DNA of 64,000 bases, taken from positions 124,001 to 188,000 of the forward strand of contig JAKMXF010000311.1 in assembly GCA_024704765.1 (NCBI GenBank). Direction: 5' to 3'. Origin of the DNA: Oopsacas minuta (lineage: Eukaryota > Animalia > Porifera). Made by a program: the position numbers and the translations under genes. The stretch's first letter is position 1, and every line of letters starts with the position of its first letter. Below are positions 15,527-38,495 of the stretch, piece after piece. A model generated the notes under the pieces. The model saw nothing but the letters and a program-made list of their open reading frames with translations, ran no database searches and was not told the origin of the DNA.

Positions 15527-16132
15527 TCCAATATTACTGGAGTCAGGTTTTGATGGCGTCATGGCGCTACATGTTAGTTAAATTTACCTATCACTAGTCA
15601 ATTACTAGTCACTACGTTCGGCCATTGAAAAATCATGCCAATATATCCAATTATGTATAAGATAATAAATCCGATTAATAGGCAATATTTCTTTATCTGT
15701 ACATTATTATATTTCACACACATGCTTGATATATAACGTATCATTCTAGGTCGTAATATTATTCAAATTTGCACAGCTGTGCAGAATTGGTGATAATATT
15801 CAAGATTAATCCACATAAAAATATACACAAAAATAATACGCTTCTGTAGGAAATTATTACGTTTGGAACAAAATATTTTCAGATACATGAAATTAACGTA
15901 AATGTATTTTCATTTGCGTCTTTGAGTCAATATTTTATTTGTATCAATTTATGATACCATTACATAAGTGTATCATATTTACAATCTCAGAAGTAGACGT
16001 CTAAACTTTAATGGTTAAATGACGCGCTTAAATTATGGATTCTGCTTTAGGATGTGTTTATGAACATTTCCTATACCACAAATAAAGTATACATAACATT
16101 TTACAAATATTCATGTAATAAAGAGTACCAAC

Positions 16133-19100
16133 CTGTCTTCTTGCACGTCTAAACTGAGCGACGTTAGCTATAGTTTCAGCAGCAAGACATTTAAGTTCCA
16201 TTGCTCCATCTTGAAGGATTTTAACCAACTCTTCAAGTCCACCCAAATCCACAATAGACAGACGAATATGAGCATTCTCAGAAATCTCCCTCAATATCTT
16301 AAGAGATCCAATCTTACATTTCACGTCTTCTGTACAGATCAAATTTATTAACAGTTCTAAACCACCCACATCTTTGATTGCCATCTGACATGTTTCAAGT
16401 TTCAAGTTGAAGTCACGCATTGAACAGAGAGCTATTACAGTAGCTGTCTGGTTACCACCTTTAAGGTATTTGACAAGCTTTTGTATCTGCCAATATTCAG
16501 ACGGGAGGTCTGTAGTAGATTCGTTCCTACGCTCTGGATACTCCTCTTCGCTTTCATCATCTGAAGAGCTCTCAATAAACACACTAATATTTGTACCTAG
16601 AAATATAACAATTTTCCATGAATTTTTTAGTTCTGATACATTATACTAACATGCAGCAATTGACGAAGGCTGTATATTATTAGTTATTAAAAGCATAAAT
16701 ATTAGATCACCCAATTACTATTCAATAGTATAAAATGGAATTGCAAGGAAACTTTAAACAAGATGGGATTGTTACAAATCTTATTTGGTATACTTGATTG
16801 TTATAGTATTTTACTATTTGCTTGAAAGCATTGGTGGATTTATTACATAACTGATTTTTTCCCTTAATTACTTCATTGCTTTTGGCTGTCTATCCTTCTT
16901 AATTAATGTATATCTGAATTACTTAATAAACCAATTCTGGATTCTTAACTATACTATTAGTGGTTGCTAAGACGTGTTCAAGAAACTAAGTCAACTATTT
17001 TAACAATAAGAATACCAATGGTAAATAATATTAGATTAAACTATAGGAACACTGAATATGGTATAAATTATCATAATAAATGTCCTTAAGCAATACAAAA
17101 CTATTATTGAAAGAAACATCTTAGCCTACCAAACACTATCAATCATTGAGTCAAATTTTGGGCATTATTTATGCCATGCAGACGGACGGACAGATGGACG
17201 ACCCAATCACAAGGAGCATTGCGGGATTTTCTCAAAGAAGCTGCATAAACTAAAAGATAAACAAACACATGACAAAACTTACAATGAGAAAAAATAAAAG
17301 ATATAAAAATATTTCCATTACTAGAGTTAAGATAAAAACATGAATGGATGTTCAATCCATAATATGCATTAATATTCCTAAGATATAAGTATTGAAATAT
17401 GATTACTTGTGGCAAACACGCAAAATAATTTCTCGAGGAGGAATAATGTATCCAAGCAATTTCCCAAAATATTTTGCGGTATTTTCATGTTACATTGGAG
17501 TAATGTCGGTATCATTTATATTTGGATTCGTTTCTCCAACCCAGAAACAAATGATCCAAGAAAATATCCTGGATTATCAAACTCTACCAATTGTTGCCTC
17601 CATTATATTTATCGCAAAAGCATTTGCGTACAGTTCGGTGCCAATTTTTACACTACTTGGGTACAATCTAAAGATAGTAGCCATAATAAGTAGTCTACTT
17701 GGAGCAACAGGGTATATGTTGATCATCATAGCAAGTTCAGCACTGTATGTGATCTTAGGTGTCGCTCTAGTAGGGTATTCTACAGGAATTGCTGGGGTAT
17801 TCATCATTGCATATACCCCCGAAGTTACATTGGATAATCAGAAAAGAATCATATGCGGAGGATTTGGATTCTGCTTTAGGATAGGTATATTTATAGCTTA
17901 TTTCACAGGAATTTGGCTACCTTTCAGATGGTTAGCAATATTTGGGCTAATTCAATTAAGTGTGTTTGGCATTTTGATAATAATAAATCCTCATTCACCT
18001 GTATGGTATGTGCAACAAGGTTTGGATGATAAAGCTAAATTAACTCTCTTGTATTTACATGGTAGTGAGTTTGATGCAGATACTGAAATAGAGAAGATCA
18101 AGGGGAAGACACTGAGTAGTAAAATTAGTTGGAATGAAAGTTTCAGAGCCTTGAAAGAATGGAAAGTATTGAAACCCACTTTGGTAATTTCTGTAATTGC
18201 CTCTCTGAAAGAGTTAGGAGGTCATGAAGCTATGGTAGCATTCTCTTCTCATATTCTAGAGAATCAACAAGCAATGGATCCTAAAGTAGCATCTCTCTTC
18301 TATCCAATATTCTTGATTATTGGATCAATTATGTGTATGCTAATTATGAATTATTGTAAGTTGAAATGGCTGATGATAACAGCATCTATTTTCCAGGCTA
18401 TTTCTCACATCTCTATGGCAATCTATTATTTAGTTACTGAGCACTATCTACACTGTAATACAGAATACTCACAATTATGTCATACATTAGCATTTTGGCC
18501 GATTTCTAACATTGCCTTGTACGCCTTTTCATTTGGATTTGGTTGGGGAGTTGTTTACTTTACATTGGTAGGAACTATGTTTACTGTACACAAAGAATTA
18601 TCTATTGGAATCGGTGGTATAATAACAAACATTTGTTCCTACCTAGCTGTTATGATATTTTTCTACTTACTTCAAAACATTGGAGGATTTGCTACTTTCC
18701 TTATGCTCACAAGTACATACTTTATAGCTATTGTTTTCACCTACTTTTTCTTGAAGTTCTAATCAACAATACGTACTTGTGATAATAAATATTTCTATTG
18801 AACTTCTATATTTCGCTAGTTACTTAGGAAATAACATAAACACAGAAATAATATACTATTATATGCCAAAAACACAATTCAGAGCATTCCATAATACAAG
18901 GATTATCTAAAGGAAAGGGTGTGGTAGTCAAATAACGGAAAACAGAGAGATATTTATATCTGAATTACTTAATAAGTCAATTCTAGATTCTTAACTTTAC
19001 TATTAATGGTTGCTAAGACGTGTTCAAGAAACTAAGTCAACTATTTTAACAATAAGAATACCAATGGTAAATAATATTAGATTAAACTATAGGAACACTG

Positions 19101-22100
19101 AATATGGTATAAATTATCATAATAAATGTCCTTAAGCAATACAAAACTATTATTGAAAGAAACATCTTAGCCTACCAAACACTATCAATCATGAGTCAAA
19201 ATTTGGACATTATTTATTCCGTGCAGACGGACGGACAGATGGACGACCCAATCACAAAGAGCATTGCGGGATTTTCCAAAGAAGCTGCATAAACTAAAAG
19301 ATAAACAAACACATGACAAAACTTACAATGAGAAAAAATAAAAGATATAAAAATATTTCCATTACTAGAGTTAAGATAAAAACATGAATGGGTGTTCAAT
19401 CCATAATATGCATTAATATTCCTAAGAAATAAGTATTGAAATATGATTACTTGTGGCAAACACGCAAAATAATTTCTCGAGGAGGAATAATGTATCCAAG
19501 CAATTTCCCAAAATATTTTGCGGTATTTTCATGTTACATTGGAGTAATGTCGGTATCATTTATATTTGGATTCGTTTCTCCAACCCAGAAACAAATGATC
19601 CAAGAAAATATCCTGGATTATCAAACTCTACCAATTTTTGCCTCCATTATATATATCGCAAATGTATTTGCGTACAGTTCGGTGCCAATTTTTACACTAC
19701 TTGGGTACAATCTAAAGATAGTAGCCATAATAAGTAGTCTACTTGGAGCAACAGGGTATATGTTGATCATCATAGCAAGTTCAGCACTGTATGTGATCTT
19801 AGGTGTCGCTCTAGTAGGGTATTCTACAGGAATTGCTGGGGTATTCATCATTGCATATACCCCCGAAGTTACATTGGATAATCAGAAAAGAATCATAAGC
19901 GGAGGATTTGGATTCTGCTTTAGGATAGGTATATTTATAGCTTATTTCACAGGAATTTGGCTACCTTTCAGAGGGTTAGCAATATTTGGGCTAATTCAAT
20001 TAAGTGTGTTTGACATTTTGATAATAATAAATCCTCATTCACCTGTATGGTATGTGCAACAAGGTTTGGATGATAAAGCTAAATCAACTCTCTTGTATTT
20101 ACATGGTAGTGAGTTTGATGCAGATACTGAAATAGAGAAGATTAAGGGGAAGACACTGAGTAGTAAAATTAGTTGGAACGAAAGTTTCAGAGCCTTGAAA
20201 GAATGGAAAGTATTGAAACCCACTTTGGTAATTTCTGTAATTGCCTTTCTGAAAGAGTTAGGAGGTCATGAAGCTATGGTAGCATTCTCTTCTCATATTC
20301 TAGAGAATCAACAAGCAATGGATCCTAAAGTAGCATCTCTCTTTTATCCAATATGCTTGATTATTGGATCAATCGTGTGTATGCTAATTATGAATTATTG
20401 TAAGTTGAAATGGCTGATGATAACAGCATCTATTTTCCAGGCTATTTCTTACATCTCTATGGCAATCTATTATTTCGTTAGTGAGCATTATCTACACTGT
20501 AATACAGAATACTCACAATTATGTCATACATTAGCATTTTGGCCGATTTCTAACATTGCCTTGTACGCCTTTTCATTTGGATTTGGTTGGGGAGTTGTTT
20601 ACTTTGCATTGGCAGGGACTATGTTTACTGTACACAAAGAATTATCTATTGGAATCGGTGGTTTTATAACAAACATTTCTACCTACCTAGCTGTTATGAT
20701 ATTTTTCTACTTACTACAAAACATTGGAGGATTTGCTACTTTCCTTATGCTCACAAGTATATACTTGATAGCTATTGTTTTCATCTACTTTTTCTTGAAG
20801 TTCTAATCAATATATACTTGTGATAATAATAATTTCTATTAAACTTCTATATTTCGCTAGTTACTTAGGAAACAACATAAACATAGAAATAATAAACTAT
20901 TATATGCAATAAATCAATTCATAGTTTTCAATAATACATGGATTTTTGAATGGGTCGTTCAAATCTTACGTGAAGCTATCAAGGGAAGGGTGTGGTTGCA
21001 AAGTGTGACAACTCCATTCTTTTGTATCACGAAGTAGTCAAAGAACGTGACACAGGGAGGGGAGGGAGTCAAAATCTATGGGATATTGAGTTACGTACGG
21101 TTGAAGGGTTCCGAATTATAAGAGGGTAATTGGGTAAGTATTGACAAAACATCTGCCATCCATGGCCTCATCTGAACGTAACTAAGAACGAGCCAACTTC
21201 TTGTTACTCAGTTAGTATATAATAGTGTCAAGAAAACAATGCAGAGAAATAATGCATGTTAGAAATATTCCAACATATTTTGCAGCATTTTCATGCTACA
21301 TCGGGGCTTTGACAGTTGTTTTTATCATAGGATTTCCTTCTCCAACTCAAAAACAACTAATCGATGAAAATATTCTAGATTATCAAACTTTACCAATATT
21401 CGCTTCAATATCGCATATCACAAGAATATTAGGTTTGAGTTCTGCATCTCTTCTAGTTCAACTTGGTTTCAATCTAAAATTGCAAGCCGTAATAAGTAGT
21501 GTACTTGGTATAGCAGGGTATGTGTTGATAGTCATAGCAAATTCAGCTGTGTACGTAATCATAGGTGTCGCTCTAGTGGGGTATTATACAGGGATTGCTG
21601 TGATGTTCGTATTTACATATATTGCAGAGGTAACTTTGGATAACCAGAGAAAGGTCATGAGTGGGGGAATCGGATTCTGCATTAGATTAGGTTTGTTCAT
21701 AGCATATTTCGTCGGAATTTGGCTACCTTTCAGATGGTTAGCAGTATTTGGTTTAATTCAAGTATGTCTGTTTTGTCTTTTGATTTTATTCAATCCTCTT
21801 TCACCTGTATGGTATGTGCAACAAAGTTTGGATGATAAAGCTAAATCAACTCTCTTGTATTTACATGGTAGTGAGTTTGATGCAGATACTGAAATACAGA
21901 AGATTAAGGGTGAGACACTGAGTAGTAAAATTAGTTGGATTGAAAGTTTCAGGACCTTAAAAGAATGGAAAGTATTAAAACCAATGATTTTGATGGCTGT
22001 AATTGCCTCTCTGAAAGAGTTAGGAGGTCATGAAGCTATGGTAGCATTCTCTTCTCATATTCTAGAGAATCAACACACAATGGATCCTAAAGTAGCATCT

Positions 22101-25100
22101 CTCTTCTATCCAATATTCTTGATTATTGGAGCAATCGTGTGTATTCTAATTATGAATTATTGTAAGTTGAAATGGCTGATGATAACAGCATCTATTTTCC
22201 AGGCTATTTCTCACATCTCTATGGCAATCTATTATTTAGTTTCTGAGCACTATCTACACTGTAATACAGAATACTCACAATTATGTCATACACTAGCATT
22301 TTGGCCCATATTTAACATAGCACTGTTTTCATTTTCATTCGGATTTGGATGGGGACTTGTATACTTCGCGTTGGTTGGCATAATGTTTACTATACACAGG
22401 GAACTCTTTACTGCTATCACAGATATGATCACCAACTTTTCTTCATACATAGTTGTTATGATATTTTTCTATTTACTTCACAATATTGGTGGGTTTGCAA
22501 CTTTTCTAATATTCTCCTGTAATTACTTAATAGCAATTGGATTGGTATATTTCTTCTTCAATATATAATATCTGTTGTTATATCAATTTCCTCATAATTG
22601 TTAGGGCAACTTATTGCATATTATTTATCCCTTATTTATGCTGACAATTAAAATATATATATTTCACCTCCTATAGGGTATTAGGTGATATATGCTTAAT
22701 CATACCGGATTGGACCATATTTAAGATTTCATGTTTTCGAAATGACTGCAAAACCTACAATAAATCGAATTTCGACTTTGCATAATTTTCTGGTAATTTT
22801 CTATGAAAATATGTATAGCTATATAGTGATTTCGCTAATTAGCAACTCGCTAAACAGCAATATATAAATAAATATCAAGATTGTTTATAGCAACCATCAG
22901 GTTCAAAATGTAGATTTTGTACTAATTATATTCCCCAATTAGCAACTGTTTGAAAACAAAACACTCGAATGTACAAATTGCTGTATTTCTAAAGCATTCA
23001 GCGTGATCTTGTATTTTAGCGAGAAAATTGTTCCACAATATTTCAATGAATGATTACTAGAATGTAAAGATAACTACGTCAGTGTATTATTACACAAATG
23101 CATGACATGATGTAATGGGTAACGAGTTCTAATCTAAAATTCCAAGTAATTTGTATAGAACATGATTCTCGATTCAATAGCAGCAATATAATAAGAGAAA
23201 TAGTAAAGAAGTTGGTATGTAGGAGATAATAATGGCTCAAAATCATATACAAACATACTTCGCAGTATTTTCATGCTACATCGGAGCATTGACTGTTGTA
23301 TTTAGAATTGGATTTCCCTCTCCAACTCAAAAACAATTGCTCGAAGAAAATATTCTAGATTATCAAACGCTGCCAATTTTTGCTTCAATATCACAGTTAA
23401 CAAAGCTAATTGGAATAATAGCTGTTCCAATTGTGGTCCAATTTGGCATAAACCTGAAAGCAATTGTGATAGTAAATTTTGTAATTGGAGTGTTAGGATA
23501 CGTTTTGATTATTGTAGCGGAGTCGGCTACGTGTATAATCACTGGGATAGCATTGGAGGGAGTTTATGCAGGAATTCTTGGAATGTTTATAATTACATAC
23601 ATTGCAGAAATTAGCTTGGATGACCAAAGGCGAGTTATGAGTGGAGGATATGGATTTTCGGTTAGAATAGGTTTATTCGTAGCATATTTTGCAGGGATTT
23701 GGCTGCCTTTCAGATGGCTAGCAGTATTTGGGCTAATTCAGATATGTCTCTTCTGTCTTTTGATTATATTCAATCCTCTTTCACCTGTATGGTATGTGCA
23801 ACAAGGTTTGGATGATAAAGCTAAATCAACTCTCTTGTATTTACATGGTAGTGAGTTTGATGCAGATACTGAAATAGAAAAGATTAAGGGTAAGACACTG
23901 AGTAGTAAAATTAGTTGGAATGAAAGTTTCAGAGCCTTGAAAGAATGGAAAGTATTGAAACCCACTTTGGTAATTTCTGTAATTGCCTCTCTAAAAGAGT
24001 TAGGAGGTCATGAAGCTATGGTAGCATTCTCTTCTCATATTCTAGAGAATCAACAAGCAATGGATCCTAAAGTAGCATCTCTCTTCTATCCAATATTCTT
24101 GATTATTGGATCAATCGTGTGTATTCTAATTATGAATTATTGTAAGTTGAAATGGCTGATGATAACAGCATCTATTTTCCAGGCTATTTCTCACATCTCT
24201 ATGGCAATCTATTATTTAGTTACTGAGCACTATCTACACTGTAATACAGAATACTCACAATTATGTCATACACTAGCATTTTGGCCAATATTTAACATTG
24301 CTTTGTATGCATTTTCCTTTGGATTTGGCTGGGGACTTGTATACTTCGCATTGGTTGGTATCATGTTTACTACACATAGAGAAATATTATCTGCTATTTC
24401 TTCTATCATTTCCAATATCTCTGCCTATACAGCTATATTGGTGTTCTTCTATTTGTTAAACAATATCGGAGGATTCGCTACTTTCCTAATATTCTCGAGT
24501 AATTATTTCATAGCAATTGGAGTTGTCTATTTTTTCATGAATATCTAATTCTTCATATATATTCCCTCAATATTATGTTCGTTTATCAAGTTTAGCTAAA
24601 AGATTACACACATGCTTAATTGTGCTATTATTTGTGGGAGACTGAGAGTACAGTGGAACTCGGATAAGAAGTACAACTTCAAGAAACAAAAATTGTAAGA
24701 ACTATCAGAGATCTGAGGCTATCCTGACACTACACATCGCCTCAGTTATCTTCCTGTCTATGCTACGAGTGCATGTGTCGATTCCTTTGCTTAGACAAAG
24801 AATGATTACACCTACAGTAGAACTCGGTTAATACATACAACGTACTACTTCTTTCAAACTAAATATCATCTCTAGTTATGTTGTTGTTCAGTTTGTTTGC
24901 TCAGACTCAAACTTCATTGTGTATAACTTATTATACTTGAGTGATTATGAATTTAGACGTAATGAACCCTGGGCCTGACTCCATTAGCTTTATTTCGAAA
25001 TCAGAGAAGTTCGACGCCCATACGAGAGATTGTATCCCGAATGTATCGGTTCGCTTGCTTAGGATTAAACTCTGGTGCTTGATTTAAGGATTGGTATTTG

Positions 25101-28100
25101 AGTGCATTATTAATAAGTTCACCTTCAATTTGTGTATAGGCACCACAATTGCTACTTGTGAATTAAAATAGTTGTTCATCCTAGCATTATCACAAGCGGG
25201 AAGCTTATTGCATGACTTAATACAAGAGCAATGAGTTCAAAATTGGAAACAAAAACATTCATAAAATAACAATGTGAGTGGATTGTGAATAGTAAATGTG
25301 ATCGTTGATTCAATAAATTTATATTTATTAAACTAAAGAGTGGGTTCTGAATAATATATGGAGGAGGAAAATGAGTGCTAGGAATATTCCAACATATTTT
25401 GCAGTATTTTCATGCTACATTGGAATAGTGGCCCTTATTAATATAGTTGGATTTTCTTCGCCAACTCAAAAACAATTGATTCACGAAAATATACTGAATG
25501 ACCAAACCCTACCAATATTTGCTTCGATCTCACATATCACAAGAATATTTGGCGGAATTTCTGCTACAATTCTTACTCAATTTGGATTCAACCTGAAAGT
25601 AGTCGTATTAGTAAGTAGTGTAATAGGGATGCTAGGTTATGAATTGATCATAATAGCTGAATCGGCTACATGCATAATCAGCGGGGCAGCTTTGGTTGGA
25701 GCATACACAGGGAGTGTTGTGTTGTTTACAAACACTTATATTGCAGAAGTTGCGTTGGATAGTCAGAGAAAAGCAATGGGCGGCGGGTTGGGCTTCAGCG
25801 TTAGAATAGGTTTGTTTATAGTATATTTTACTGGAATTTGGCTCCCTTTTAGATGGCTAGCTGTATCCGGATTAATCGAAGTTTGTGTATTTTGCTTTTT
25901 GATTGTAATAAATCCTCTTTCACCTGTATGGTATGTTCAACAAGGTTTGGATGATAAAGCTAAATCAACTCTCTTGTATTTACATGGTAGTGAGTTTGAT
26001 GCAGATACTGAAATACAGAAGATTAAGGGGAAGACACTGAGTAGTAAAATTAGTTGGATTGAAAGATTCAGGACCTTAAAAGAATGGAAAGTAATAAAAC
26101 CAATGGTATTGATAGCTGTACTCGCATTTCTGAAAGAGTTAGGAGGTCATGAAGCTATGGTAGCATTCTCTTCTCATATTCTAGAGAATCAACAAGCAAT
26201 GGATCCTAAAGTAGCATCTCTCTTCTATCCAATATTCTTGATTATTGGATCAATCATGTGTATGCTAATTATGAATTATTGTAAGTTGAAATGGCTGATG
26301 ATAACAGCATCTATTTTCCAGGCTATTTCTCACATCTCTATGGCAATCTATTATTTAGTTTCTGAGCATTATCTACACTGTAATACAGAATACTCACAAT
26401 TATGCCATAAGCTAGCCTTTTGGCCAATATTTAACATTGCTTTGTTCGCCTTTTCCTTTGGATTTGGCTGGGGACTTGTATACTTCTCTCTTATTGGAAT
26501 TATGTTCACTAAGCATAGAGAATTGTTTACTGGTATCTCATCTGCTATTACGAACCTTGCTAACTACATGGCTATAATGATATTCTTCTATTTATTAAAG
26601 AATATTGGAGGATTCGCCACTTTCCTGATATTCTCGAGTAATTATTTTATAGCAATTGCATTTATATCTTTCTTCTTGAATATATAGTTTATTGCTAACT
26701 AAACATGATATACATATTATTATTCAATAGCTGTAGATGTTATTAAATTAATTTGAAAAATATTGAATTGATTGTGTGAACGTTCATCACTGCACTAAAC
26801 TTGAATAAGGTTATATTTCGTATATCATAAGCTATCTGAATGGTCTCCTATTGTCCATTCAACTTAGTCAATTACTCTAATATGATCCATGATCCCATGA
26901 TTTAATGTTGGTAATAGGTATTGAGTTGTAAAATGAATTTGCGCGCGCGTGACGTATTTGTTGAAGAAAATGTGAGTTCCCAAACAGACAATAAAGATAA
27001 AATAATAGTAATTTTCAACAGTCTTATTGTGAAAAGAGTGAAATGATTTTCAGGGAACTTCCAACTTACTTTGCAGTATTTTCATGCTACATAGGAGTAT
27101 TTTCTGGAATATTTATAGGCGGATTTACTTCTCCAACGCAAAAGCAATTGATCGAGGAAAACATTTTAGATTACCAAACACTGCCAATATTTGCATCCAT
27201 CTCACAATTCTCAAGAATTTTTGGTCTGTCCATTGCTCCTCTTTTAGTTCAATTAGGAATTAATCTGAATGTAATTGTAACTGTGAATTGTTTGTACGGA
27301 TTATTAGCATGTATGTTGATCATATTATCTAGTTCAGCTGCCTGGGTAATTGCTGGCGTTGCGTTTATGGGAATGCATACTGGAATCATTGAGATATATT
27401 TGATGACATATATTGCAGAAGTGAGTTTAGAAAATCAAAGGAAAATAACAATCGGTGGATTTGGATTTTGTATAAGAATAGGATTGTTCATAGTCTTTTT
27501 GGCAGGAATTTGGCTGCCTTTCAGATGGTTAGCAGTATTTGGAATAATCCAGATTTGTCTGTTTTGCCTTTTGACTGTTTTCAATCCTCTTTCACCTGTA
27601 TGGTATGTGCAACAAGGTTTGGATGATAAAGCTAAATCAACTCTCTTGTATTTACATGGTAGTGAGTTTGATGCAGATACTGAAATAGAGAAGATTAAGG
27701 GTGAGACACTGAGTAGTAAAATTAGTTGGATTGAAAGTTTCAGAGCTTTGAAAGACTGGAAAGTATTGAAAACAATTTTGATATTGTCCGTAATAGGTAT
27801 TTTGAAAGAATGTGGAGGTCATGAAGCTATGGTATCATTCTCTTCTCACATTCTAGAGAATCAACAAGCAATGGATCCTAAAGTAGCATCTCTCTTCTAT
27901 CCAATATTCTTGATTATTGGAGCAATCGTGTGTATTCTAATCATGAATTATTGTAAGTTGAAATGGCTGATGATAACAGCATCTATTTTCCAGGCTATTT
28001 CTCACATCTCTATGGCAATCTATTATTTAGTTACTGAGCACTATCTACACTGTAATACAGAATACTCACAATTATGTCATACACTAGCATTTTGGCCAAT

Positions 28101-28868
28101 TTCTAACCTCGCCTTGTACTCCTTTTCATTTGGATTTGGATGGGGACTTGTATACTATGCATTGTTAGGGACTATGTTTACAGTGCACAGAGAATTATCA
28201 ACTAGCATCACCGAAATAATCTCATGCCTATCTTCCTACCTTATTATTATGATATTTTTCTATCTACTCCATAATATTGGCGGGTTTTTTACGTTCCTTA
28301 TCTTTTCAGGGAATTATTTCTTAGCTGTTGTATTTGTGTATTTATTTATTAATTAAGTTCTAATATAATGCTTGTTGTAATCCTATAATAATATATGCTA
28401 AGTGATAGTACACATTATTAAATGCTAATTATATTATGGTCAGACATTATGTTCTGTTTAACAAAATATAATACATTAAAGAGGTAATAGGAAAGTACGT
28501 GCATACCTGCTCGAGTACTGATCCTAGTCTGTTGTGATTTGAGTGACATTTGACTGACACGTTTGGCTGGCATCTTTGATGAAGTTTTGATAGGAGATTT
28601 GAGAGGAGATTTAATCTTCATTCGATCTTTCTCAATCTCAGAACTATTCTGCTCTGGTTTTTGAAATGCTTTCTCTGCCAAAAGATCATCTGTATGATAT
28701 TTATTCTTATCAGTCAATTTAGATCTCCGTAGTTTGAGTTCCTGTGAGATATCTTTCGAGGTTGGCTTCTTTACAGGACGTCTTGCGGACTGTTTGCGAT
28801 TGGGAGAGTCAGGAGAAATGTCTACTTTTGAGTCTATGATAACGCTAGGGCCATCCATTAAAATGGAG
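16133..28868 (-). CDS. ARMC4: ARMC4/ODAD2 outer dynein arm docking subunit, partial; exons 28868-28507 and 16596-16133
   Basis: Exon 16596-16133 encodes [71 protein letters not shown], the ARMC4 hallmark (high confidence). The upstream K/S-rich exon has acceptor tttttcag at 28869 and donor GCAG|GTATGC at 28506, phase-compatible with acceptor tttctag|GT at 16597 (moderate confidence). Later exons were not found in the window. Confidence 0.75.
17446..18762 (+). CDS. MFS sugar porter, GLUT8/Tret1-like, copy 1 (438 aa)
   Basis: About 12 hydrophobic segments; [20 protein letters not shown] and FGFGWG motifs. First ATG 17446 gives the same 1317-bp length as the paralogs; the ORF track starts at TTG 17392. 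Confidence 0.88.
   Translation: MYPSNFPKYFAVFSCYIGVMSVSFIFGFVSPTQKQMIQENILDYQTLPIVASIIFIAKAFAYSSVPIFTLLGYNLKIVAIISSLLGATGYMLIIIASSALYVILGVALVGYSTGIAGVFIIAYTPEVTLDNQKRIICGGFGFCFRIGIFIAYFTGIWLPFRWLAIFGLIQLSVFGILIIINPHSPVWYVQQGLDDKAKLTLLYLHGSEFDADTEIEKIKGKTLSSKISWNESFRALKEWKVLKPTLVISVIASLKELGGHEAMVAFSSHILENQQAMDPKVASLFYPIFLIIGSIMCMLIMNYCKLKWLMITASIFQAISHISMAIYYLVTEHYLHCNTEYSQLCHTLAFWPISNIALYAFSFGFGWGVVYFTLVGTMFTVHKELSIGIGGIITNICSYLAVMIFFYLLQNIGGFATFLMLTSTYFIAIVFTYFFLKF
19490..20806 (+). CDS. MFS sugar porter, GLUT8/Tret1-like, copy 2 (438 aa)
   Basis: Near-identical to copy 1; intact ORF from ATG 19490. Confidence 0.85.
   Translation: MYPSNFPKYFAVFSCYIGVMSVSFIFGFVSPTQKQMIQENILDYQTLPIFASIIYIANVFAYSSVPIFTLLGYNLKIVAIISSLLGATGYMLIIIASSALYVILGVALVGYSTGIAGVFIIAYTPEVTLDNQKRIISGGFGFCFRIGIFIAYFTGIWLPFRGLAIFGLIQLSVFDILIIINPHSPVWYVQQGLDDKAKSTLLYLHGSEFDADTEIEKIKGKTLSSKISWNESFRALKEWKVLKPTLVISVIAFLKELGGHEAMVAFSSHILENQQAMDPKVASLFYPICLIIGSIVCMLIMNYCKLKWLMITASIFQAISYISMAIYYFVSEHYLHCNTEYSQLCHTLAFWPISNIALYAFSFGFGWGVVYFALAGTMFTVHKELSIGIGGFITNISTYLAVMIFFYLLQNIGGFATFLMLTSIYLIAIVFIYFFLKF
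21252..22568 (+). CDS. MFS sugar porter, GLUT8/Tret1-like, copy 3 (438 aa)
   Basis: Same motifs as copy 1; ATG 21252 gives 1317 bp. Confidence 0.88.
   Translation: MHVRNIPTYFAAFSCYIGALTVVFIIGFPSPTQKQLIDENILDYQTLPIFASISHITRILGLSSASLLVQLGFNLKLQAVISSVLGIAGYVLIVIANSAVYVIIGVALVGYYTGIAVMFVFTYIAEVTLDNQRKVMSGGIGFCIRLGLFIAYFVGIWLPFRWLAVFGLIQVCLFCLLILFNPLSPVWYVQQSLDDKAKSTLLYLHGSEFDADTEIQKIKGETLSSKISWIESFRTLKEWKVLKPMILMAVIASLKELGGHEAMVAFSSHILENQHTMDPKVASLFYPIFLIIGAIVCILIMNYCKLKWLMITASIFQAISHISMAIYYLVSEHYLHCNTEYSQLCHTLAFWPIFNIALFSFSFGFGWGLVYFALVGIMFTIHRELFTAITDMITNFSSYIVVMIFFYLLHNIGGFATFLIFSCNYLIAIGLVYFFFNI
23232..24548 (+). CDS. MFS sugar porter, GLUT8/Tret1-like, copy 4 (438 aa)
   Basis: Intact intronless ORF with family motifs. 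Confidence 0.88.
   Translation: MAQNHIQTYFAVFSCYIGALTVVFRIGFPSPTQKQLLEENILDYQTLPIFASISQLTKLIGIIAVPIVVQFGINLKAIVIVNFVIGVLGYVLIIVAESATCIITGIALEGVYAGILGMFIITYIAEISLDDQRRVMSGGYGFSVRIGLFVAYFAGIWLPFRWLAVFGLIQICLFCLLIIFNPLSPVWYVQQGLDDKAKSTLLYLHGSEFDADTEIEKIKGKTLSSKISWNESFRALKEWKVLKPTLVISVIASLKELGGHEAMVAFSSHILENQQAMDPKVASLFYPIFLIIGSIVCILIMNYCKLKWLMITASIFQAISHISMAIYYLVTEHYLHCNTEYSQLCHTLAFWPIFNIALYAFSFGFGWGLVYFALVGIMFTTHREILSAISSIISNISAYTAILVFFYLLNNIGGFATFLIFSSNYFIAIGVVYFFMNI
25371..26687 (+). CDS. MFS sugar porter, GLUT8/Tret1-like, copy 5 (438 aa)
   Basis: Intact intronless ORF with family motifs. Confidence 0.88.
   Translation: MSARNIPTYFAVFSCYIGIVALINIVGFSSPTQKQLIHENILNDQTLPIFASISHITRIFGGISATILTQFGFNLKVVVLVSSVIGMLGYELIIIAESATCIISGAALVGAYTGSVVLFTNTYIAEVALDSQRKAMGGGLGFSVRIGLFIVYFTGIWLPFRWLAVSGLIEVCVFCFLIVINPLSPVWYVQQGLDDKAKSTLLYLHGSEFDADTEIQKIKGKTLSSKISWIERFRTLKEWKVIKPMVLIAVLAFLKELGGHEAMVAFSSHILENQQAMDPKVASLFYPIFLIIGSIMCMLIMNYCKLKWLMITASIFQAISHISMAIYYLVSEHYLHCNTEYSQLCHKLAFWPIFNIALFAFSFGFGWGLVYFSLIGIMFTKHRELFTGISSAITNLANYMAIMIFFYLLKNIGGFATFLIFSSNYFIAIAFISFFLNI
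27043..28356 (+). CDS. MFS sugar porter, GLUT8/Tret1-like, copy 6 (437 aa)
   Basis: Intact intronless ORF with family motifs. Confidence 0.88.
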   Translation: MIFRELPTYFAVFSCYIGVFSGIFIGGFTSPTQKQLIEENILDYQTLPIFASISQFSRIFGLSIAPLLVQLGINLNVIVTVNCLYGLLACMLIILSSSAAWVIAGVAFMGMHTGIIEIYLMTYIAEVSLENQRKITIGGFGFCIRIGLFIVFLAGIWLPFRWLAVFGIIQICLFCLLTVFNPLSPVWYVQQGLDDKAKSTLLYLHGSEFDADTEIEKIKGETLSSKISWIESFRALKDWKVLKTILILSVIGILKECGGHEAMVSFSSHILENQQAMDPKVASLFYPIFLIIGAIVCILIMNYCKLKWLMITASIFQAISHISMAIYYLVTEHYLHCNTEYSQLCHTLAFWPISNLALYSFSFGFGWGLVYYALLGTMFTVHRELSTSITEIISCLSSYLIIMIFFYLLHNIGGFFTFLIFSGNYFLAVVFVYLFIN

Positions 28869-29773
28869 CTGAAAAAGATGGAATTATACAGAAGTACATA
28901 CGAGGTATGTCACCAAAATATTGAAAATATGCATTCAGTATTAATTAATAAAAACATATTGAGCGAATTTAATAATGACTAAATCTATTTATATGTACCG
29001 TATTTCCCTGAACAAGCGCCAGGGCTAGAACAAAGCTCCCAAAAGTTGTGAATAAAATTTATCACCAGAACTTCTTCGATCAAATTTACGCCTCATTTAG
29101 CTATGCAACAAATTATGATAATTAATTTCCCAAAATCATTTGTATTTTCCAAAATTGTATAAGAATCTACACAAAAATGCCCATATATTTTTGACAAACT
29201 TTTCTTGGAAAAAAAATGTGTTAATAATTAACTATTGATCGCTGGGTATCCACGGCTTTTCAATGAACCAGTGTTCATAAAAATTTGAGGAAGAAAACAG
29301 GCATCAAATGTTGAGAACTTAGGCCATGTAAATATTACTTGTTTTTCATCCGGAATTTCCTCAGAAACTGGGATGGCGTTCGGTATTTTATTTATATGTT
29401 ATAGGCGAAGTTTGTATGTAGTATATTTTGACCATTCGATTATCTCATTACATTTTTTCTTGGCATGAAAATATTGATAAGTTCAACTCTACAGATAATA
29501 AAATGTGCATTGAACAATCTTTGATCTTAGAATTTTCCTTATATTTCTAAAAAATACAAATAAAATGTATCAAGACGGAGGACAAAATTTGGGAAGGTCG
29601 GAGATGAGAAACAAATATATTAGTTTACATGGCTTTATTGAAGGCTTATATTTGTTTGTGAGCTCTTAATCTAGGAGGTCATTCTAAGAATTCATGCATT
29701 GTACTGGTTATAACTTACAAGGGTTTAAAGATTCTTGTATATAAAAATTACAAATACAAATATTTTTTTGCAA

Positions 29774-31090
29774 ATGAATTTCAAAGAAGCTCCAAATTAC
29801 TTTGCAGTATTTTCATGTTATATAGGTGTATTAACACTTGTATTTGATATTGGATTAGTTTCCCCAACTCAAAAACAGTTATTGGAAGAAAATATTCTGA
29901 ATTACGAGAATTTACCAATCTTTGCTTCCACCTCATATGTCGCATGTAGCCTCGGGTATCTTATTGGGCCATTTATTGTGTATTTTGGTATAAATAGCAA
30001 AGTAATGGCCACAGTTAGTTGTCTGCTTGGAGTATTTGGATATATGCTGATTATTGTAACGGAAACAGCTATGTGTATTATCATAGGTATTGGTTCGGTG
30101 GGAATATACAGTGCATTTGCATCGATTTTCATAAAAATATATATCGCGGAAGTAACCCTAGATAGCCAGAGGAAAATTCTGAGTGGTGGATACGGATTTT
30201 GGATCAGAATAGGGCTATTTGTTGCTTACTTTGCAGGAATTTGGCTGCCTTTCAGGTGGTTAGCTGTACTAGGAATAATTCAGATATGTTTGTTCTGCTT
30301 TTTGATAATAATAAATCCTCATTCACCTGTATGGTATGTGCAACAAAGTTTGGATGATAAAGCTAAATCAACTCTCTTGTATTTACATGGTAGTGAGTTT
30401 GATGCAGATACTGAAATAGAAAAGATTAAGGGTAAGACACTGAGTAGTAAAATTAGTTGGAATGAAAGTTTCAGAGCTTTGAAAGACTGGAAAGTATTGA
30501 AACCTATTATCATATTGTCTCTATTAGCAGTACTGAAAGAGTTAGGAGGTCATGAAGCTATGGTAGCATTCTCTTCTCATATTCTAGAGAATCAACAAGC
30601 AATGGATCCTAAAGTAGCATCTCTCTTCTATCCAATATTCTTGATTATTGGAGCAATCGTGTGTATTCTAATTATGAATTATTGTAAGTTGAAATGGCTG
30701 ATGATAACAGCATCTATTTTCCAGGCTATTTCTCACATCTCTATGGCAATCTATTATTTAGTTTCTGAGCACTATCTACACTGTAATACAGAATACTCAC
30801 AATTATGTCATACACTAGCATTTTGGCCAATTTCTAACCTTGCTTTGTACGCCTTTTCATTTGGATTCGGTTGGGGGCTCGTACATTATTCACTGATAGG
30901 AATAGTGTTCACTAAGCATAAGGCGCTCTCTTTCGGAATTGTGGGTGTTTTTGGAAACACTACTAGCTTTGCAGTTATATACATCTTTTTCTACTTGCTA
31001 CAAAACATTGGTGGATTCTTCACATTTATAATGCTTTCCTTTAACTACCTTTTTGCTATTGGTTACATATATTTATTCATAAATATATAA
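29774..31090 (+). CDS. MFS sugar porter, GLUT8/Tret1-like, copy 7 (438 aa)
   Basis: ATG 29774 gives 1317 bp; family motifs present. Confidence 0.88.
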   Translation: MNFKEAPNYFAVFSCYIGVLTLVFDIGLVSPTQKQLLEENILNYENLPIFASTSYVACSLGYLIGPFIVYFGINSKVMATVSCLLGVFGYMLIIVTETAMCIIIGIGSVGIYSAFASIFIKIYIAEVTLDSQRKILSGGYGFWIRIGLFVAYFAGIWLPFRWLAVLGIIQICLFCFLIIINPHSPVWYVQQSLDDKAKSTLLYLHGSEFDADTEIEKIKGKTLSSKISWNESFRALKDWKVLKPIIILSLLAVLKELGGHEAMVAFSSHILENQQAMDPKVASLFYPIFLIIGAIVCILIMNYCKLKWLMITASIFQAISHISMAIYYLVSEHYLHCNTEYSQLCHTLAFWPISNLALYAFSFGFGWGLVHYSLIGIVFTKHKALSFGIVGVFGNTTSFAVIYIFFYLLQNIGGFFTFIMLSFNYLFAIGYIYLFINI

Positions 31091-33569: not shown

Positions 33570-35591
33570 ATGGAGCTTGGAAATACTTATAAGGATGACC
33601 ATGAAATTTATGAATTCCCATTCTATGCCTCAAATAAATACTCGTTAAAATTGTATATGCTTCAGATGGAAGGAGATTCGATATGTTCCGCTAAGAGAGG
33701 AAATGGTGAACGTGGATATTCATCAATACATAAGATTATCCAACGCATTTCCTATAAAAACATTTCCTATTCTGTAAGAGAACAAGGAAAAATATTCAAA
33801 AAGAAAAAGCAAATCCTGACAAATGTCAATGGTAAAATGTGTACCGGCTTGAATGCTATTCTCGGGCCTACTGGAAGTGGAAAAACTACTCTAATGGATA
33901 TATTAGCCGCACGTAAGAATAAACGATATCTACAAGGGACTGTGCTTATAGATGGACAACCTACACCGAAACATTTCAAATATATGACGGGATATGTCAC
34001 ACAAGATGTCCATCTCCATGATATGATGTCTATAAGGGAGTCAATATATTTCTCGGCGAATCTCCGACTCCCTTCACATGTATCTTCAAAGGAAAAGGCC
34101 ATTCGTGTTCAGGAAGTTATTGATTTATTAGGCCTAACTAGCATATCCGAGTCGCGTATTGGTAATGCGTATATTCGCGGTATTTCTGGTGGTGAATTAA
34201 AACTTACTCATATTGCAATGGAATTAGTAATATCTCACTCGATTCTGTTTCTTGACGAACCAACGACTGGGCTAGACGCGTACACTTCAGTTGAATTGAT
34301 GGAAACTTTGAAAAATATTTCAAATGAAGGTAAACTCGTTATTGTAACAATTCACCAACCAAGGTATGCTATCTATAAACTATTCGATTCCATTACATTG
34401 TTATCACGTGGTCAGACTGTGTATCATGGCCATGCTAACTACGCAATTGAGTATTTCGCTTCTTTAGGCTATATATGTCCGGACAGAGAAAATCCAACAG
34501 ATTTTTTCTTAGATACGATAGCTAAAGATGAATTGGAACAGCCTAAAATCGAAAATCTCATTGTGAAACAAAATTTATCTGTAATATTCGAGCAATCAGA
34601 AATGAGTTCGATTTTACAAAATAGTTTACAAGCTTCCAGTGGGATAAGTAATGGAAATAATGCATTAGAAAGTTTTATACAAAACTGCCATCCATCTAGC
34701 TTTCTATGGCAATCATACGTTGTCGGTTTACGTTCAATGAAACGTATTATGCGCTCTCCAACTGAATTCATTCTCATTATGATTACATCACAAATAATAG
34801 GACTTTTGTTTGGTGGCATCTACTGGCAACTTGAATGCAGTTTATCTGGCCTACAAAATAGAGTAGGTTGTCTATTCTTAGTTCTAATGCTAATCATTAC
34901 ATTCAATCTGGCATGCATTGAAACATTCCTGGAATCAAAGGTAATATTCATACACGAGTATACACATGGATATTACCGTGTCTCGAGTTATTTTCTCTCA
35001 AATGTAATTCCAGACCTGATAATCAAACGTCTCATGCCAACACTTGTGTCTAATACAATCCTATACTTAATGACCGGGTTTAAATTAAAAAGCGAGAATA
35101 TGGCTATATACTTACTAGTAATAACGCTTGCTAATATCAATGCTGGGGCATTACATGTATTTCTAGGCTGTTTTAGCAATTCATTTTCAATTGCAGCCGT
35201 ATTGAGTGGATTCATTGATGTTTTGATGATTATTTTCGCTGGAAATCTAATAAACATCACATCGCTACCAATTTGGATACAGTGGGTACAGTATTTGAGT
35301 ATATTTCGTCTCGGGTTATCAAGTTTGTTGGTGAATGAGTTGGTTGGGTTAGAATTCTGTCTGGACTATTTTCGGGAAATAACCATGGATAAATCTTGCT
35401 TTAACGCTACATATAATCTCGGTGATAATGTAATATCTACAATTGAAACTGGTGAGAAATATTTGGAGTCACAAGGTATTCTATACGCAGAACCTTTTGA
35501 CGTTTGGAGAGGAATCATTGGTTTAGCTCTATATGCTATCATTTTAATGATTCTAGCTTATACAGCACTCAGAACGCTCAAAAAAAATTAA
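33570..35591 (+). CDS. ABCG2/White-like half ABC transporter, copy 1, intronless
   Basis: Walker A GPTGSGKTT, signature ISGGE, LFLDEPTTGLD, TIHQP, NBD-TMD order. The start may be ATG 33666, preceded by ttcag. Confidence 0.92.
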   Translation: MELGNTYKDDHEIYEFPFYASNKYSLKLYMLQMEGDSICSAKRGNGERGYSSIHKIIQRISYKNISYSVREQGKIFKKKKQILTNVNGKMCTGLNAILGPTGSGKTTLMDILAARKNKRYLQGTVLIDGQPTPKHFKYMTGYVTQDVHLHDMMSIRESIYFSANLRLPSHVSSKEKAIRVQEVIDLLGLTSISESRIGNAYIRGISGGELKLTHIAMELVISHSILFLDEPTTGLDAYTSVELMETLKNISNEGKLVIVTIHQPRYAIYKLFDSITLLSRGQTVYHGHANYAIEYFASLGYICPDRENPTDFFLDTIAKDELEQPKIENLIVKQNLSVIFEQSEMSSILQNSLQASSGISNGNNALESFIQNCHPSSFLWQSYVVGLRSMKRIMRSPTEFILIMITSQIIGLLFGGIYWQLECSLSGLQNRVGCLFLVLMLIITFNLACIETFLESKVIFIHEYTHGYYRVSSYFLSNVIPDLIIKRLMPTLVSNTILYLMTGFKLKSENMAIYLLVITLANINAGALHVFLGCFSNSFSIAAVLSGFIDVLMIIFAGNLINITSLPIWIQWVQYLSIFRLGLSSLLVNELVGLEFCLDYFREITMDKSCFNATYNLGDNVISTIETGEKYLESQGILYAEPFDVWRGIIGLALYAIILMILAYTALRTLKKN

Positions 35592-36227: not shown

Positions 36228-37703
36228 TTACTGCTTGCTTGGCGGCAATTCTTCCTTTTTCATCTCTTTAATATGAATGTAATCTTTATACTCAGATTTT
36301 GTGTCAAATTCGAATTCTTGTGCCCAATCAGGTAACTTAGTACGAAACTCCCAATCTGGGCTAGAATAGGACAGCGCGTGTAGAAACATAGACATTTGAG
36401 GTATATTCTTCAGTGCATGACAGTCTACACATAAATCATCAGGATTTGGATTGAGTTTAGCGTAGATAGCTTGTAGCTCTGTTTGAGTAAGGTTTATACC
36501 ACCGTAGTCCAATGGGTATTGCATTATATGGTCATCTGCTATTTTAGATGGCCGTATATCTTTACATACACTGGATTCCTTAATAATAGGCTCATTTTGT
36601 GTATTCTCCTGTTGATCGATTTGTTTGACAAATATCTTAACCATTTCTTCAACCTTTTCAGGAGGCATCGGTTTACTTTTCTCGTATTTTGGTAATTCCC
36701 AGGCTGGGTGATTATATATGGGATCATTTACAATAGGAAATCCTAAATGCTGTAAATGTACGCGTATTTGATGCATACGTCCAGTTCTCGGCTTACATAA
36801 CAATAAACTACGTTCACCGTTAAATGCCAATAGTTGAAAATATGTTTCAGACTGTTTGCCTTCATCTTTGTCACAGGTAATCTGGCAAACTCCAATATTA
36901 TGTGACACACATTTTATCGGCTCATTTACCATAATTGAATCTGGAAATTTCCCATTTACAAGACAAACGTATTCTTTCTCAATTTCCCTCTTTTGCAAAA
37001 AATTACTCAATTGGCGTGATTTTTTCGAATTCCGTGCGAATATCATTATCCCACTCGTCAGCCGATCAAGCCTGTGTACACTGAATATATCCTCAAAACC
37101 ATACTCTAAACGTAGTATATTTAGAAGTGTATTGAAATGGTATCTACCTGATGGATGCACTGGTATAGATGAGGGTTTATTTATGACGAACATATCTTCG
37201 TTTTTGAATAGAATCTCAATGGGAGTGGTTAATACAGGCGGCTCGTGGCGGTGAACTAGATGCGTTAGGATATCACCGTTTTTAACTTTGACTTCTACAT
37301 TCGTGATTTTTGCACCGTTTAACCGCAGTCGTCCGTTGTTTATAACTTTAGCGTAGTACTCATACGAGCGACTTGTAAATTCAGTGCAAGTGACATCAAT
37401 AATTGATCTGTCGAACCAACGTGCTTTTGCGTTCGAATGAAAGTTAAAAAAATACGGTTTTAAGAATTGGAGAGAATGTTCTCTATGAAAATGACATAAA
37501 TCAGAATGATCGTTATCACGTAATTTGAATTTTTTCTTGCCACGGGTATCGTATTCAGGGTGATCTCTATTCTTCCTAAAAGGCTTTGAAATCGTCTCAG
37601 AATAACTATTCGAAGGAGATTGATTAGATGCCATTTTAAATGAAAGTACTTGAATAGATTTGTAGCTGGAAAATATCGATTTTATTTGATAGGTTTTTCT
37701 CAT
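36228..37703 (-). CDS. RPUSD2: RluA-family RNA pseudouridine synthase (RPUSD2/Rib2-like), intronless
   Basis: S4-like region, HRHEPPV, NKPSSIPVHPSG, catalytic VHRLDRLTSG, PRTGRMHQIRVHLQHLGFPIVNDPIY. Alternative start at ATG 37634. Confidence 0.88.
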   Translation of the reverse strand: MRKTYQIKSIFSSYKSIQVLSFKMASNQSPSNSYSETISKPFRKNRDHPEYDTRGKKKFKLRDNDHSDLCHFHREHSLQFLKPYFFNFHSNAKARWFDRSIIDVTCTEFTSRSYEYYAKVINNGRLRLNGAKITNVEVKVKNGDILTHLVHRHEPPVLTTPIEILFKNEDMFVINKPSSIPVHPSGRYHFNTLLNILRLEYGFEDIFSVHRLDRLTSGIMIFARNSKKSRQLSNFLQKREIEKEYVCLVNGKFPDSIMVNEPIKCVSHNIGVCQITCDKDEGKQSETYFQLLAFNGERSLLLCKPRTGRMHQIRVHLQHLGFPIVNDPIYNHPAWELPKYEKSKPMPPEKVEEMVKIFVKQIDQQENTQNEPIIKESSVCKDIRPSKIADDHIMQYPLDYGGINLTQTELQAIYAKLNPNPDDLCVDCHALKNIPQMSMFLHALSYSSPDWEFRTKLPDWAQEFEFDTKSEYKDYIHIKEMKKEELPPSKQ

Positions 37704-38495
37704 AATAAAGTGGCTATGTAAAGTGTCGAATTGTTCGCTAAAATAGATACAAAGTTAATATTTTTATGAGCTGCTCTAGCGGTCACAGACCCGACAAATT
37801 TGAAATGATACATGGCATTTTATATCTGATGGATCGATTCCATATAGTGTGTTGCAAATACTATACTAATGGAATAGTAAGTGACTATTGCCGTGCCTGT
37901 ACATGTTGTATGCATAGGCGCAATTAGGGTCATTTTGGGTTGCCTAGATTGGACTCCACCATAATACAAAAGTCTAGGATGGGTGGACACGACGTCCAGA
38001 GTTAACGTTATCTTTGCCCACCCAGACTCATGACTCTAGTTGTGCATATGGCCGTACCATAGACCCCAACCTATCACTTTCCATATGCTTGTTATCATAC
38101 CGTTTTTACGGTTTATTGCCTAATATAGACAGGTATTTTCTTAACATAACATTGTGTGGGAAATGAAATAATTTTCAGGAATAATTCTAATTTTAAATTT
38201 TCGTAATACATGCTATCGCTACAAATGCTGGTCAAACCAGCATTTGGCTGGTGACTTAAGGTGTATGTCGTACGACTTCAGATTTAGTAACAAAGGGAAC
38301 CTTTATTATACCATTCAAGTTAGTATTGATACCAGATAGTTTGATATCATATATAAATGTTCCTTGGATGATAGATGATACTCGTGGTTATTAATTATCC
38401 TACTAAAATACATTATACAGCCTATCAATATTACAGATTGTACCATTTATCAAACAATAGGCAGTAGAATATAATTATTGATAAACACAAAGAAA

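Follow-up and report, generated by a model that had tools for sequence, protein, structure and literature searches.

Region-restricted gene conversion as the probable cause of a uniform central segment in a tandem array of sugar-porter-like genes of the glass sponge Oopsacas minuta

Homogenisation that is confined to one region of a tandemly repeated gene and is specific to a lineage is already established for protocadherins and for trypanosome gene arrays. In the protocadherin clusters of fugu, zebrafish and human, regional gene conversion acts in the variable exons (PMC1852091, citing Noonan et al. 2004), and tandem arrays of Trypanosoma brucei, transporter arrays included, undergo concerted evolution by partial gene conversion (PMC1855330). 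In the ATP1A1 paralogues of Leptodactylus frogs, conversion homogenises all but a set of sites that stay different (bioRxiv 10.1101/2020.08.04.234435). Here, we describe an array of seven genes with a fold of the sugar-porter type, W1 to W7, in the early-branching animal Oopsacas minuta, in which a central segment of about 515 bp is near-identical between copies that are strongly diverged on both sides of it. The array occupies positions 17446-31090 of a stretch of 64,000 nucleotides, referred to as the window (assembly GCA_024704765.1, contig JAKMXF010000311.1, positions 124,001 to 188,000 of the forward strand), to which all coordinates refer unless a locus is named.

As in the protocadherins, tandem paralogues share a block that is near-identical in DNA, silent sites included, while the rest of the exon, thought to carry specificity, has diverged, and the pattern is lineage-specific. 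In the protocadherins, however, the block occupies the 3' end of the exon, with a raised GC content at third codon positions (GC3), whereas the sponge block is central, diverged on both sides, interrupted by a variable island, without a rise in GC3 and part of a membrane transporter; together with its recurrence in glass sponges, these features set the sponge case apart. The likeness to T. brucei lies in the coexistence of partial conversion and divergence inside one array, but the trypanosome arrays are mostly dosage repeats in polycistronic units, while in the sponge, old copies stand at individual spacings and have diverged strongly beyond the block. In ATP1A1, too, the conversion-resistant sites of a duplicated membrane transport protein are flagged as candidates for functional difference; there, two copies differ at few sites and function has been tested, whereas seven to eleven sponge copies differ over whole helices.

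The seven open reading frames (ORFs) are arranged in tandem, head to tail, on the forward strand of an AT-rich window (GC about 33%), and are intronless, in a common register and free of indels. Each begins with its ATG at the first position given: W1 at 17446-18762, W2 at 19490-20806, W3 at 21252-22568, W4 at 23232-24548, W5 at 25371-26687, W6 at 27043-28356 and W7 at 29774-31090, with start-to-start distances of 2044, 1762, 1980, 2139, 1672 and 2731 bp. Six of the seven have exactly 438 codons, as a first-pass annotation of this DNA had counted, and W6, whose stop comes one codon earlier, has 437. The indel-free block of 515 bp that the same annotation had delimited is indeed present in every copy, at 17986-18500 in W1 (codons 181-351, spanning the intracellular helical (ICH) domain, transmembrane helices (TM) 7, 8 and 9 and the loop between TM9 and TM10), 20030-20544 in W2, 21792-22306 in W3, 23772-24286 in W4, 25911-26425 in W5, 27583-28097 in W6 and 30314-30828 in W7, and the blocks are 93.6-98.1% identical to that of W4. 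W1 and W2 are a recent tandem duplicate of about 2 kb, 99% identical throughout, so that the array effectively holds six old lineages. Apart from this pair, the spacers between copies are unalignable, which indicates that the array is old.

The contrast between the block and its surroundings is clearest at silent sites. Comparing the six old lineages in 15 pairs, with the core taken as codons 181-242 plus 254-345, fourfold-degenerate sites differ in 21 of 707 cases in the core (3%) vs 474 of 919 in the flanks (52%), and the contrast is significant in each of the 15 pairs (Fisher p < 3e-5). In a per-codon map, codons 2-180 and 347-437 vary nearly throughout, while codons 181-345 are near-invariant save for 243-253; this bears out the earlier description of near-identity, synonymous sites included, apart from a short variable segment just before the KELGG motif. 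Nei-Gojobori estimates of synonymous (dS) and nonsynonymous (dN) divergence follow the same partition, with a dS of 1.31 and a dN of 0.28 in the N-terminal flank (codons 1-178), 0.13 and 0.04 in core A (179-242), 0.59 and 0.40 in the island (243-253), 0.05 and 0.02 in core B (254-346) and 1.58 and 0.21 in the C-terminal flank (347-437). Core and flank dS are thus far from similar (0.05-0.13 vs 1.3-1.6), a similarity that would have spoken against conversion. At the protein level, copies share 87-97% identity across the core, compared with 52-68% across the N flank and 57-76% across the C flank, and the 50-65% first judged by eye for the flanks was about right. The 3' border of silent identity is sharp and falls at codon 346/347, beyond which the codons of TM10 (347-372) still encode a conserved protein segment and yet differ at many synonymous sites; the silent identity of the core is therefore not explicable by protein conservation. 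A neighbouring array of three ABCG genes, taken as a control, has no homogenised block, and its fourfold sites are saturated even in the most conserved motifs.

Arrays from other sponge assemblies (L002, L004, L005, L006 and L007) reveal that the core is uniform only within a genome. L006 is the syntenic locus, with a transporter array followed by UPF0172, ABCG, pseudouridine synthase and ABCG genes, as in the window, and all W cores are equidistant from its cores (37-40% fourfold difference). Between Oopsacas and three other sponge assemblies, fourfold sites differ by 39-53% in the core and 58-63% in the flanks. With differences of 37-53% between species, silent sites of the core are evidently free to change, and they are alike only within a genome. 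The ratio of within- to between-species fourfold distance (Jukes-Cantor corrected), which is independent of topology, is about 0.06 for the core and 0.8 for the flanks, and in the flanks, copies of the array are as distant from each other as from those of other species. A central block is also significant in L004 (core vs flank fourfold difference 2% vs 18%) and in L002 (25% vs 40%, with two zones of high identity). The 5' edge of the core, near codon 181, is common to the arrays of three species, and the 3' edge differs between them (about 346, 360 and 375).

Trees tell the same story. Built from core columns, they place the nine full-length Oopsacas copies in one group and the five L002 copies in another, while flank trees divide the Oopsacas copies into two sets, each joining genes of other species. 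The disagreement is significant for one flank-tree clade, W3/4/5 with clade A, which core columns reject in the approximately unbiased (AU) test (p=0.0037); a second flank-tree grouping was not rejected by core columns (AU p=0.108). The homogenisation is genuine, restricted to the core and particular to this genome, and it does not stem from constraint on silent sites.

The explanation that we consider very likely is region-restricted interlocus gene conversion, that is, concerted evolution, of the cytoplasmic helical domain and TM7b-TM9. Repeated short-tract, non-reciprocal conversion between loci would hold the central segment (the ICH domain, TM7b, TM8, TM9 and the cysteine-containing loop 9-10) near-identical among copies, leaving out TM1-6 and TM10-12, and the 11-codon island in TM7a would mostly escape. 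Since neither spacers nor flanks are homogenised, conversion is preferred to unequal crossing-over. The first-pass annotation had likewise proposed position-restricted conversion of the loop and TM7b-TM9, and this half of its interpretation stands, given that silent sites are alike within a genome and diverged between species, that core and flank trees disagree and that graphs of the raw reads agree. The other half, a constant/variable design in which helices of the substrate path diversify, fares less well, as discussed below. Conversion depends on high local identity, and the block most likely persists for that reason, the core being the slowest-diverging part of the protein; on this neutral account, it stayed similar enough to convert while the flanks escaped, and selection against conversion of the flanks may contribute. 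Conservation across species fits such homology-dependent persistence, protein identity being 0.66-0.83 in the core, 0.43-0.66 in TM1-6, TM11 and TM12 and 0.73 in TM10. For trypanosome arrays, too, it has been argued that regions of lower conservation escape conversion (PMC1855330).

Variants within the core form a reticulate pattern, in which 99 out of 190 pairs of sites are incompatible by the four-gamete test, although the assignment of variants to copies is unsafe in an assembly polished with short reads. A Sawyer-type run test found a single tract, in which W1 and W4 share 31 concordant polymorphic sites in a run (p<0.001), and it is powerless where all copies have been homogenised together, which is why silent-site contrasts were used instead. 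Crossing-over in the core that would shuffle N and C flanks was considered as well and is unsupported, flank trees differing only weakly (AU congruence p=0.23 and 0.39).

Several observations weigh against conversion of the core. GC3 is not raised in the core (0.29 vs 0.31 in the flanks), in contrast to the GC-biased signature reported for fugu protocadherins (PMC1852091), although such a rise is not a universal requirement for conversion. The younger arrays L006 and L007 display only a weak, non-significant trend (p=0.33). Monophyly of the Oopsacas copies is compatible with the flank data (AU p=0.11 and 0.38), so that flank lineages predating the species split are not proven. The escape of the island is unexplained under a purely neutral model, since tracts do run across it (W1 to W4). 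Finally, the O. minuta assembly was built with SPAdes from Illumina and corrected PacBio reads and polished with Pilon (PMC10280926), and individual core variants may be placed in the wrong copies.

Among the alternatives, the one that survives best is an adaptive design, in which selection removes tracts that enter TM1-6, TM7a or TM10-12, preserving copy-specific substrate or partner specificity, while ICH-TM7b-TM9 is kept uniform. It refines conversion of the core rather than excluding it, and the neutral and selective readings fit equally well; as a design in its own right, we hold it to be possible though unlikely. The shared 5' edge agrees with it, as does an island diverged between two homogenised sides, whose types move between copies independently of the flanks: W4 carries the island of W1, and that of W7 recurs in two copies at L003. 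The island of W4 lies at 23961-23993 (codons 244-254 in the feature coordinates) and those of the other copies at the same offset (18175-18207, 20219-20251, 21981-22013, 26100-26132, 27772-27804 and 30503-30535). Each of W4-W7 also has private charged or polar residues in helices of the N domain (e.g. R25, D25, E91, E109, E117 and K121), and an invariant charged set, R145, K255, E256, H260 and E261, sits in or next to the constant part. However, flank dN/dS is 0.26-0.66 in the unsaturated pairs, older pairs being saturated, which indicates purifying selection, and the sole value above 1, that of W1-W2 (16 nonsynonymous vs 2 synonymous changes), is not significant (p=0.40). The peripheral TM3 varies to the same degree as TM2 and TM4, roughly half of the TM columns that vary involve hydrophobic exchanges alone, the 3' edge shifts between species and islands are uniform within the arrays of other species, for which reason a sharing of island types across species, also considered, was rejected. 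The diversification of substrate-path helices that was first proposed has the low flank dN/dS and the variability of TM3 against it; moreover, TM7 and TM8, helices that line the substrate path and hold the substrate site of GLUT-type porters, belong to the constant block, so that it is inaccurate to oppose a constant scaffold to a variable path. In its most elaborate form, which we regard as rather doubtful, glass sponges would keep a modular GLUT-fold repertoire, with ICH-TM7b-TM9 made uniform by conversion and with specificity set by a selection-shielded N domain, a TM7a cassette shuffled between copies and TM10-12.

An artefact, with cores that are truly more diverged and were collapsed to a consensus by SPAdes or Pilon, is very improbable. 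Short reads and Pilon polishing make the concern legitimate, since multi-mapping reads can homogenise repeats, and the reticulate core pattern may in part be an artefact of graph resolution. Logan unitigs from four runs were therefore placed on 21252-26687. In runs of the sequenced sample, error-free unique unitigs cover 22505-23765 and 24318-25935 and end a few codons from the core edges: they stop at 23765/23796 and resume at 24318 around the W4 core and stop at 25935 in that of W5. Depth in the same unitigs is 49-69 in the flanks, while core bins sum to about 250-1200. The breaks and the excess depth mean that the reads themselves hold a multi-copy, near-identical core, which answers the concern about collapse or mis-polishing. 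A separate run under a different organism label (X5) likewise gives core pieces at about tenfold flank depth, the central block recurs in independent, long-read-style assemblies of other sponges whose contig names look like those of metaMDBG or hifiasm, and mis-mapping alone would not produce a silent-site step as sharp as that at codon 346/347. In a further run under another organism label (X6), the bin 22890-23071 in the W3-W4 spacer has a summed depth of about 16,600, far above all else, and probably represents a repeat that this organism also carries.

Still less credible is an RNA or DNA element in the core, regulatory or an antisense feature of a host gene, that forbids silent change: the array does lie antisense inside a putative host gene, and the core differs less than the flanks between species, but the silent sites change freely between species, Rfam returned no RNA family match in the window and a lower core value would follow from cores that coalesce at the species split and flanks with an earlier coalescence. 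Equally hard to credit are young genes in which the core shows the true age and the flanks evolved fast through local hypermutation or strong positive selection, which, although compatible with the unrejected monophyly, would need a 20- to 40-fold step in mutation rate at two sharp borders and is opposed by saturated flank silent sites, flank dN/dS well below 1, unalignable spacers and flank distances as large within the array as between species.

With respect to the encoded proteins, all seven match Pfam Sugar_tr (PF00083, major facilitator superfamily (MFS)) over residues ~20-436, with 72-102 bits vs a cutoff of 22.3. A phmmer search of the PDB with one protein gave no match, and a profile of the family was therefore needed, which finds GlcP and GLUT1 at E values of about 1e-18 to 1e-19. 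An AlphaFold2 model from 51 homologues (predicted local distance difference test score, pLDDT, 89.5) has twelve long helices and four short ones at residues 185-235, and reaches TM-scores of 0.84 to GLUT1/3/4 and 0.85-0.90 to models of ERD6-like proteins, Tret1 and GLUT8/6. On this model, the core comprises the last turn of TM6, the four cytoplasmic helices, TM7, TM8, TM9 and a loop 9-10 with two conserved cysteines, the flanks comprise TM1-6 and TM10-12 and the island is the cytoplasmic half of TM7 (TM7a). Like class III GLUTs (GLUT8/GLUT6), insect Tret1 and plant ERD6-like proteins, the sponge proteins thus combine a Sugar_tr match, a GLUT fold of 12 TM helices and an ICH domain, and membership of the family by fold and profile holds. 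Unlike those sugar porters, which are the nearest reviewed proteins at only 17-22% identity, they differ at the sugar-binding positions. In GLUT1 and GLUT3 structures, Q161, Q282, Q283, N288 and N317 (GLUT1 numbering) coordinate the sugar. None is kept in the sponge family, where the profile alignment places G141, K255, E256, E261 and L290, respectively, all invariant or nearly so, and the QQxSGxN motif of TM7 is replaced by a near-invariant KELGGHE (codons 255-261; 23994-24014 in W4). Low identity and these replacements make sugar transport doubtful, and the replaced residues, together with the invariant R145 and H260, argue against a neutral hexose; the substrate is probably not a hexose, and KELGGHE with R145 in TM5 points to a charged or otherwise non-hexose one. 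A database search retrieved about 100 relatives, nearly all of 437-440 aa and many in groups on single contigs of ENA assemblies. Together with the conversion described above, we think it very probable that one branch of the sugar-porter (GLUT/Tret1/ERD6-like) family has expanded in glass sponges and that the seven genes are tandem paralogues of long standing within it.

The array therefore offers an unusually clean natural case of concerted evolution limited to the middle of a gene, repeated in several glass-sponge genomes. The pattern would show where paralogues of an MFS transporter can swap sequence harmlessly (in the helical domain and TM7b-TM9) and where they stay copy-specific (in TM1-6, TM7a and TM10-12), and this split supplies ready hypotheses for chimeras in an uncharacterised family in which charged residues replace sugar-binding ones. 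In practice, trees of the family must omit the core, and where such arrays occur, gene models and assemblies from short reads need to be checked against long reads.

The core is present in at least 11 copies in the Oopsacas genome, seven in the array, about three at other sites of its contig and one on a different contig. The last (L001) is a W3-like copy with a proportion of synonymous differences (pS) of about 0.15 in the flanks and 0.05 in the core. On the contig of the window, L003 holds one intact W3-like copy and one partial copy; the copy at L003:9747-11049 (forward strand) has a frameshift near codon 226, is annotated as the 320-aa LOD99_5824 and carries a W7-type island in a core only 89-93% like the others. 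Within the young group of W3 and its relatives, fourfold difference is 2.8% in the core vs 9.4% in the flanks (p=0.016), a contrast that suggests that conversion has continued, also between loci.

The W1/W2 duplicate deserves separate mention. Its core dS exceeds its flank dS, but on 5 vs 2 changes and with equal total differences (2.4% vs 2.2%), and carries no weight here. Identity over the 138 bp that follow each of the two genes (18767-18904 vs 20808-20944) is only 88%, against 99% for the genes and 97% for the upstream 540 bp, so that the duplicate is itself a mosaic. Directly upstream of the duplication unit (16906-18904), a remnant of the family at 16788-16910 (forward strand) matches the last 41 residues at 56% identity.

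Two reverse-strand ORFs suggest that W1-W6 lie antisense in an intron of about 11.8 kb of an armadillo-repeat gene. A Met-starting ORF at 28418-28858, between W6 and W7, is the probable first exon of this host gene and is 75% conserved inside the L002 array (L002:12261-12704), and an armadillo-repeat ORF at 16058-16582 is a probable later exon; W7 lies upstream of the first exon. Beyond the array, the intronless tandem ABCG-type half-transporter genes used as a control occupy 33570-35591, 38478-40442 and 41128-43071 on the forward strand and are interleaved with a pseudouridine synthase gene on the reverse strand (36228-37703). Unlike the tidy head-to-tail array of Oopsacas, those of L002, L004 and L005 have genes in both orientations and are interspersed with transposase and reverse-transcriptase ORFs (L002:15682-16417 and 19374-20444, L004:727-1251 and L005:7442-9261).

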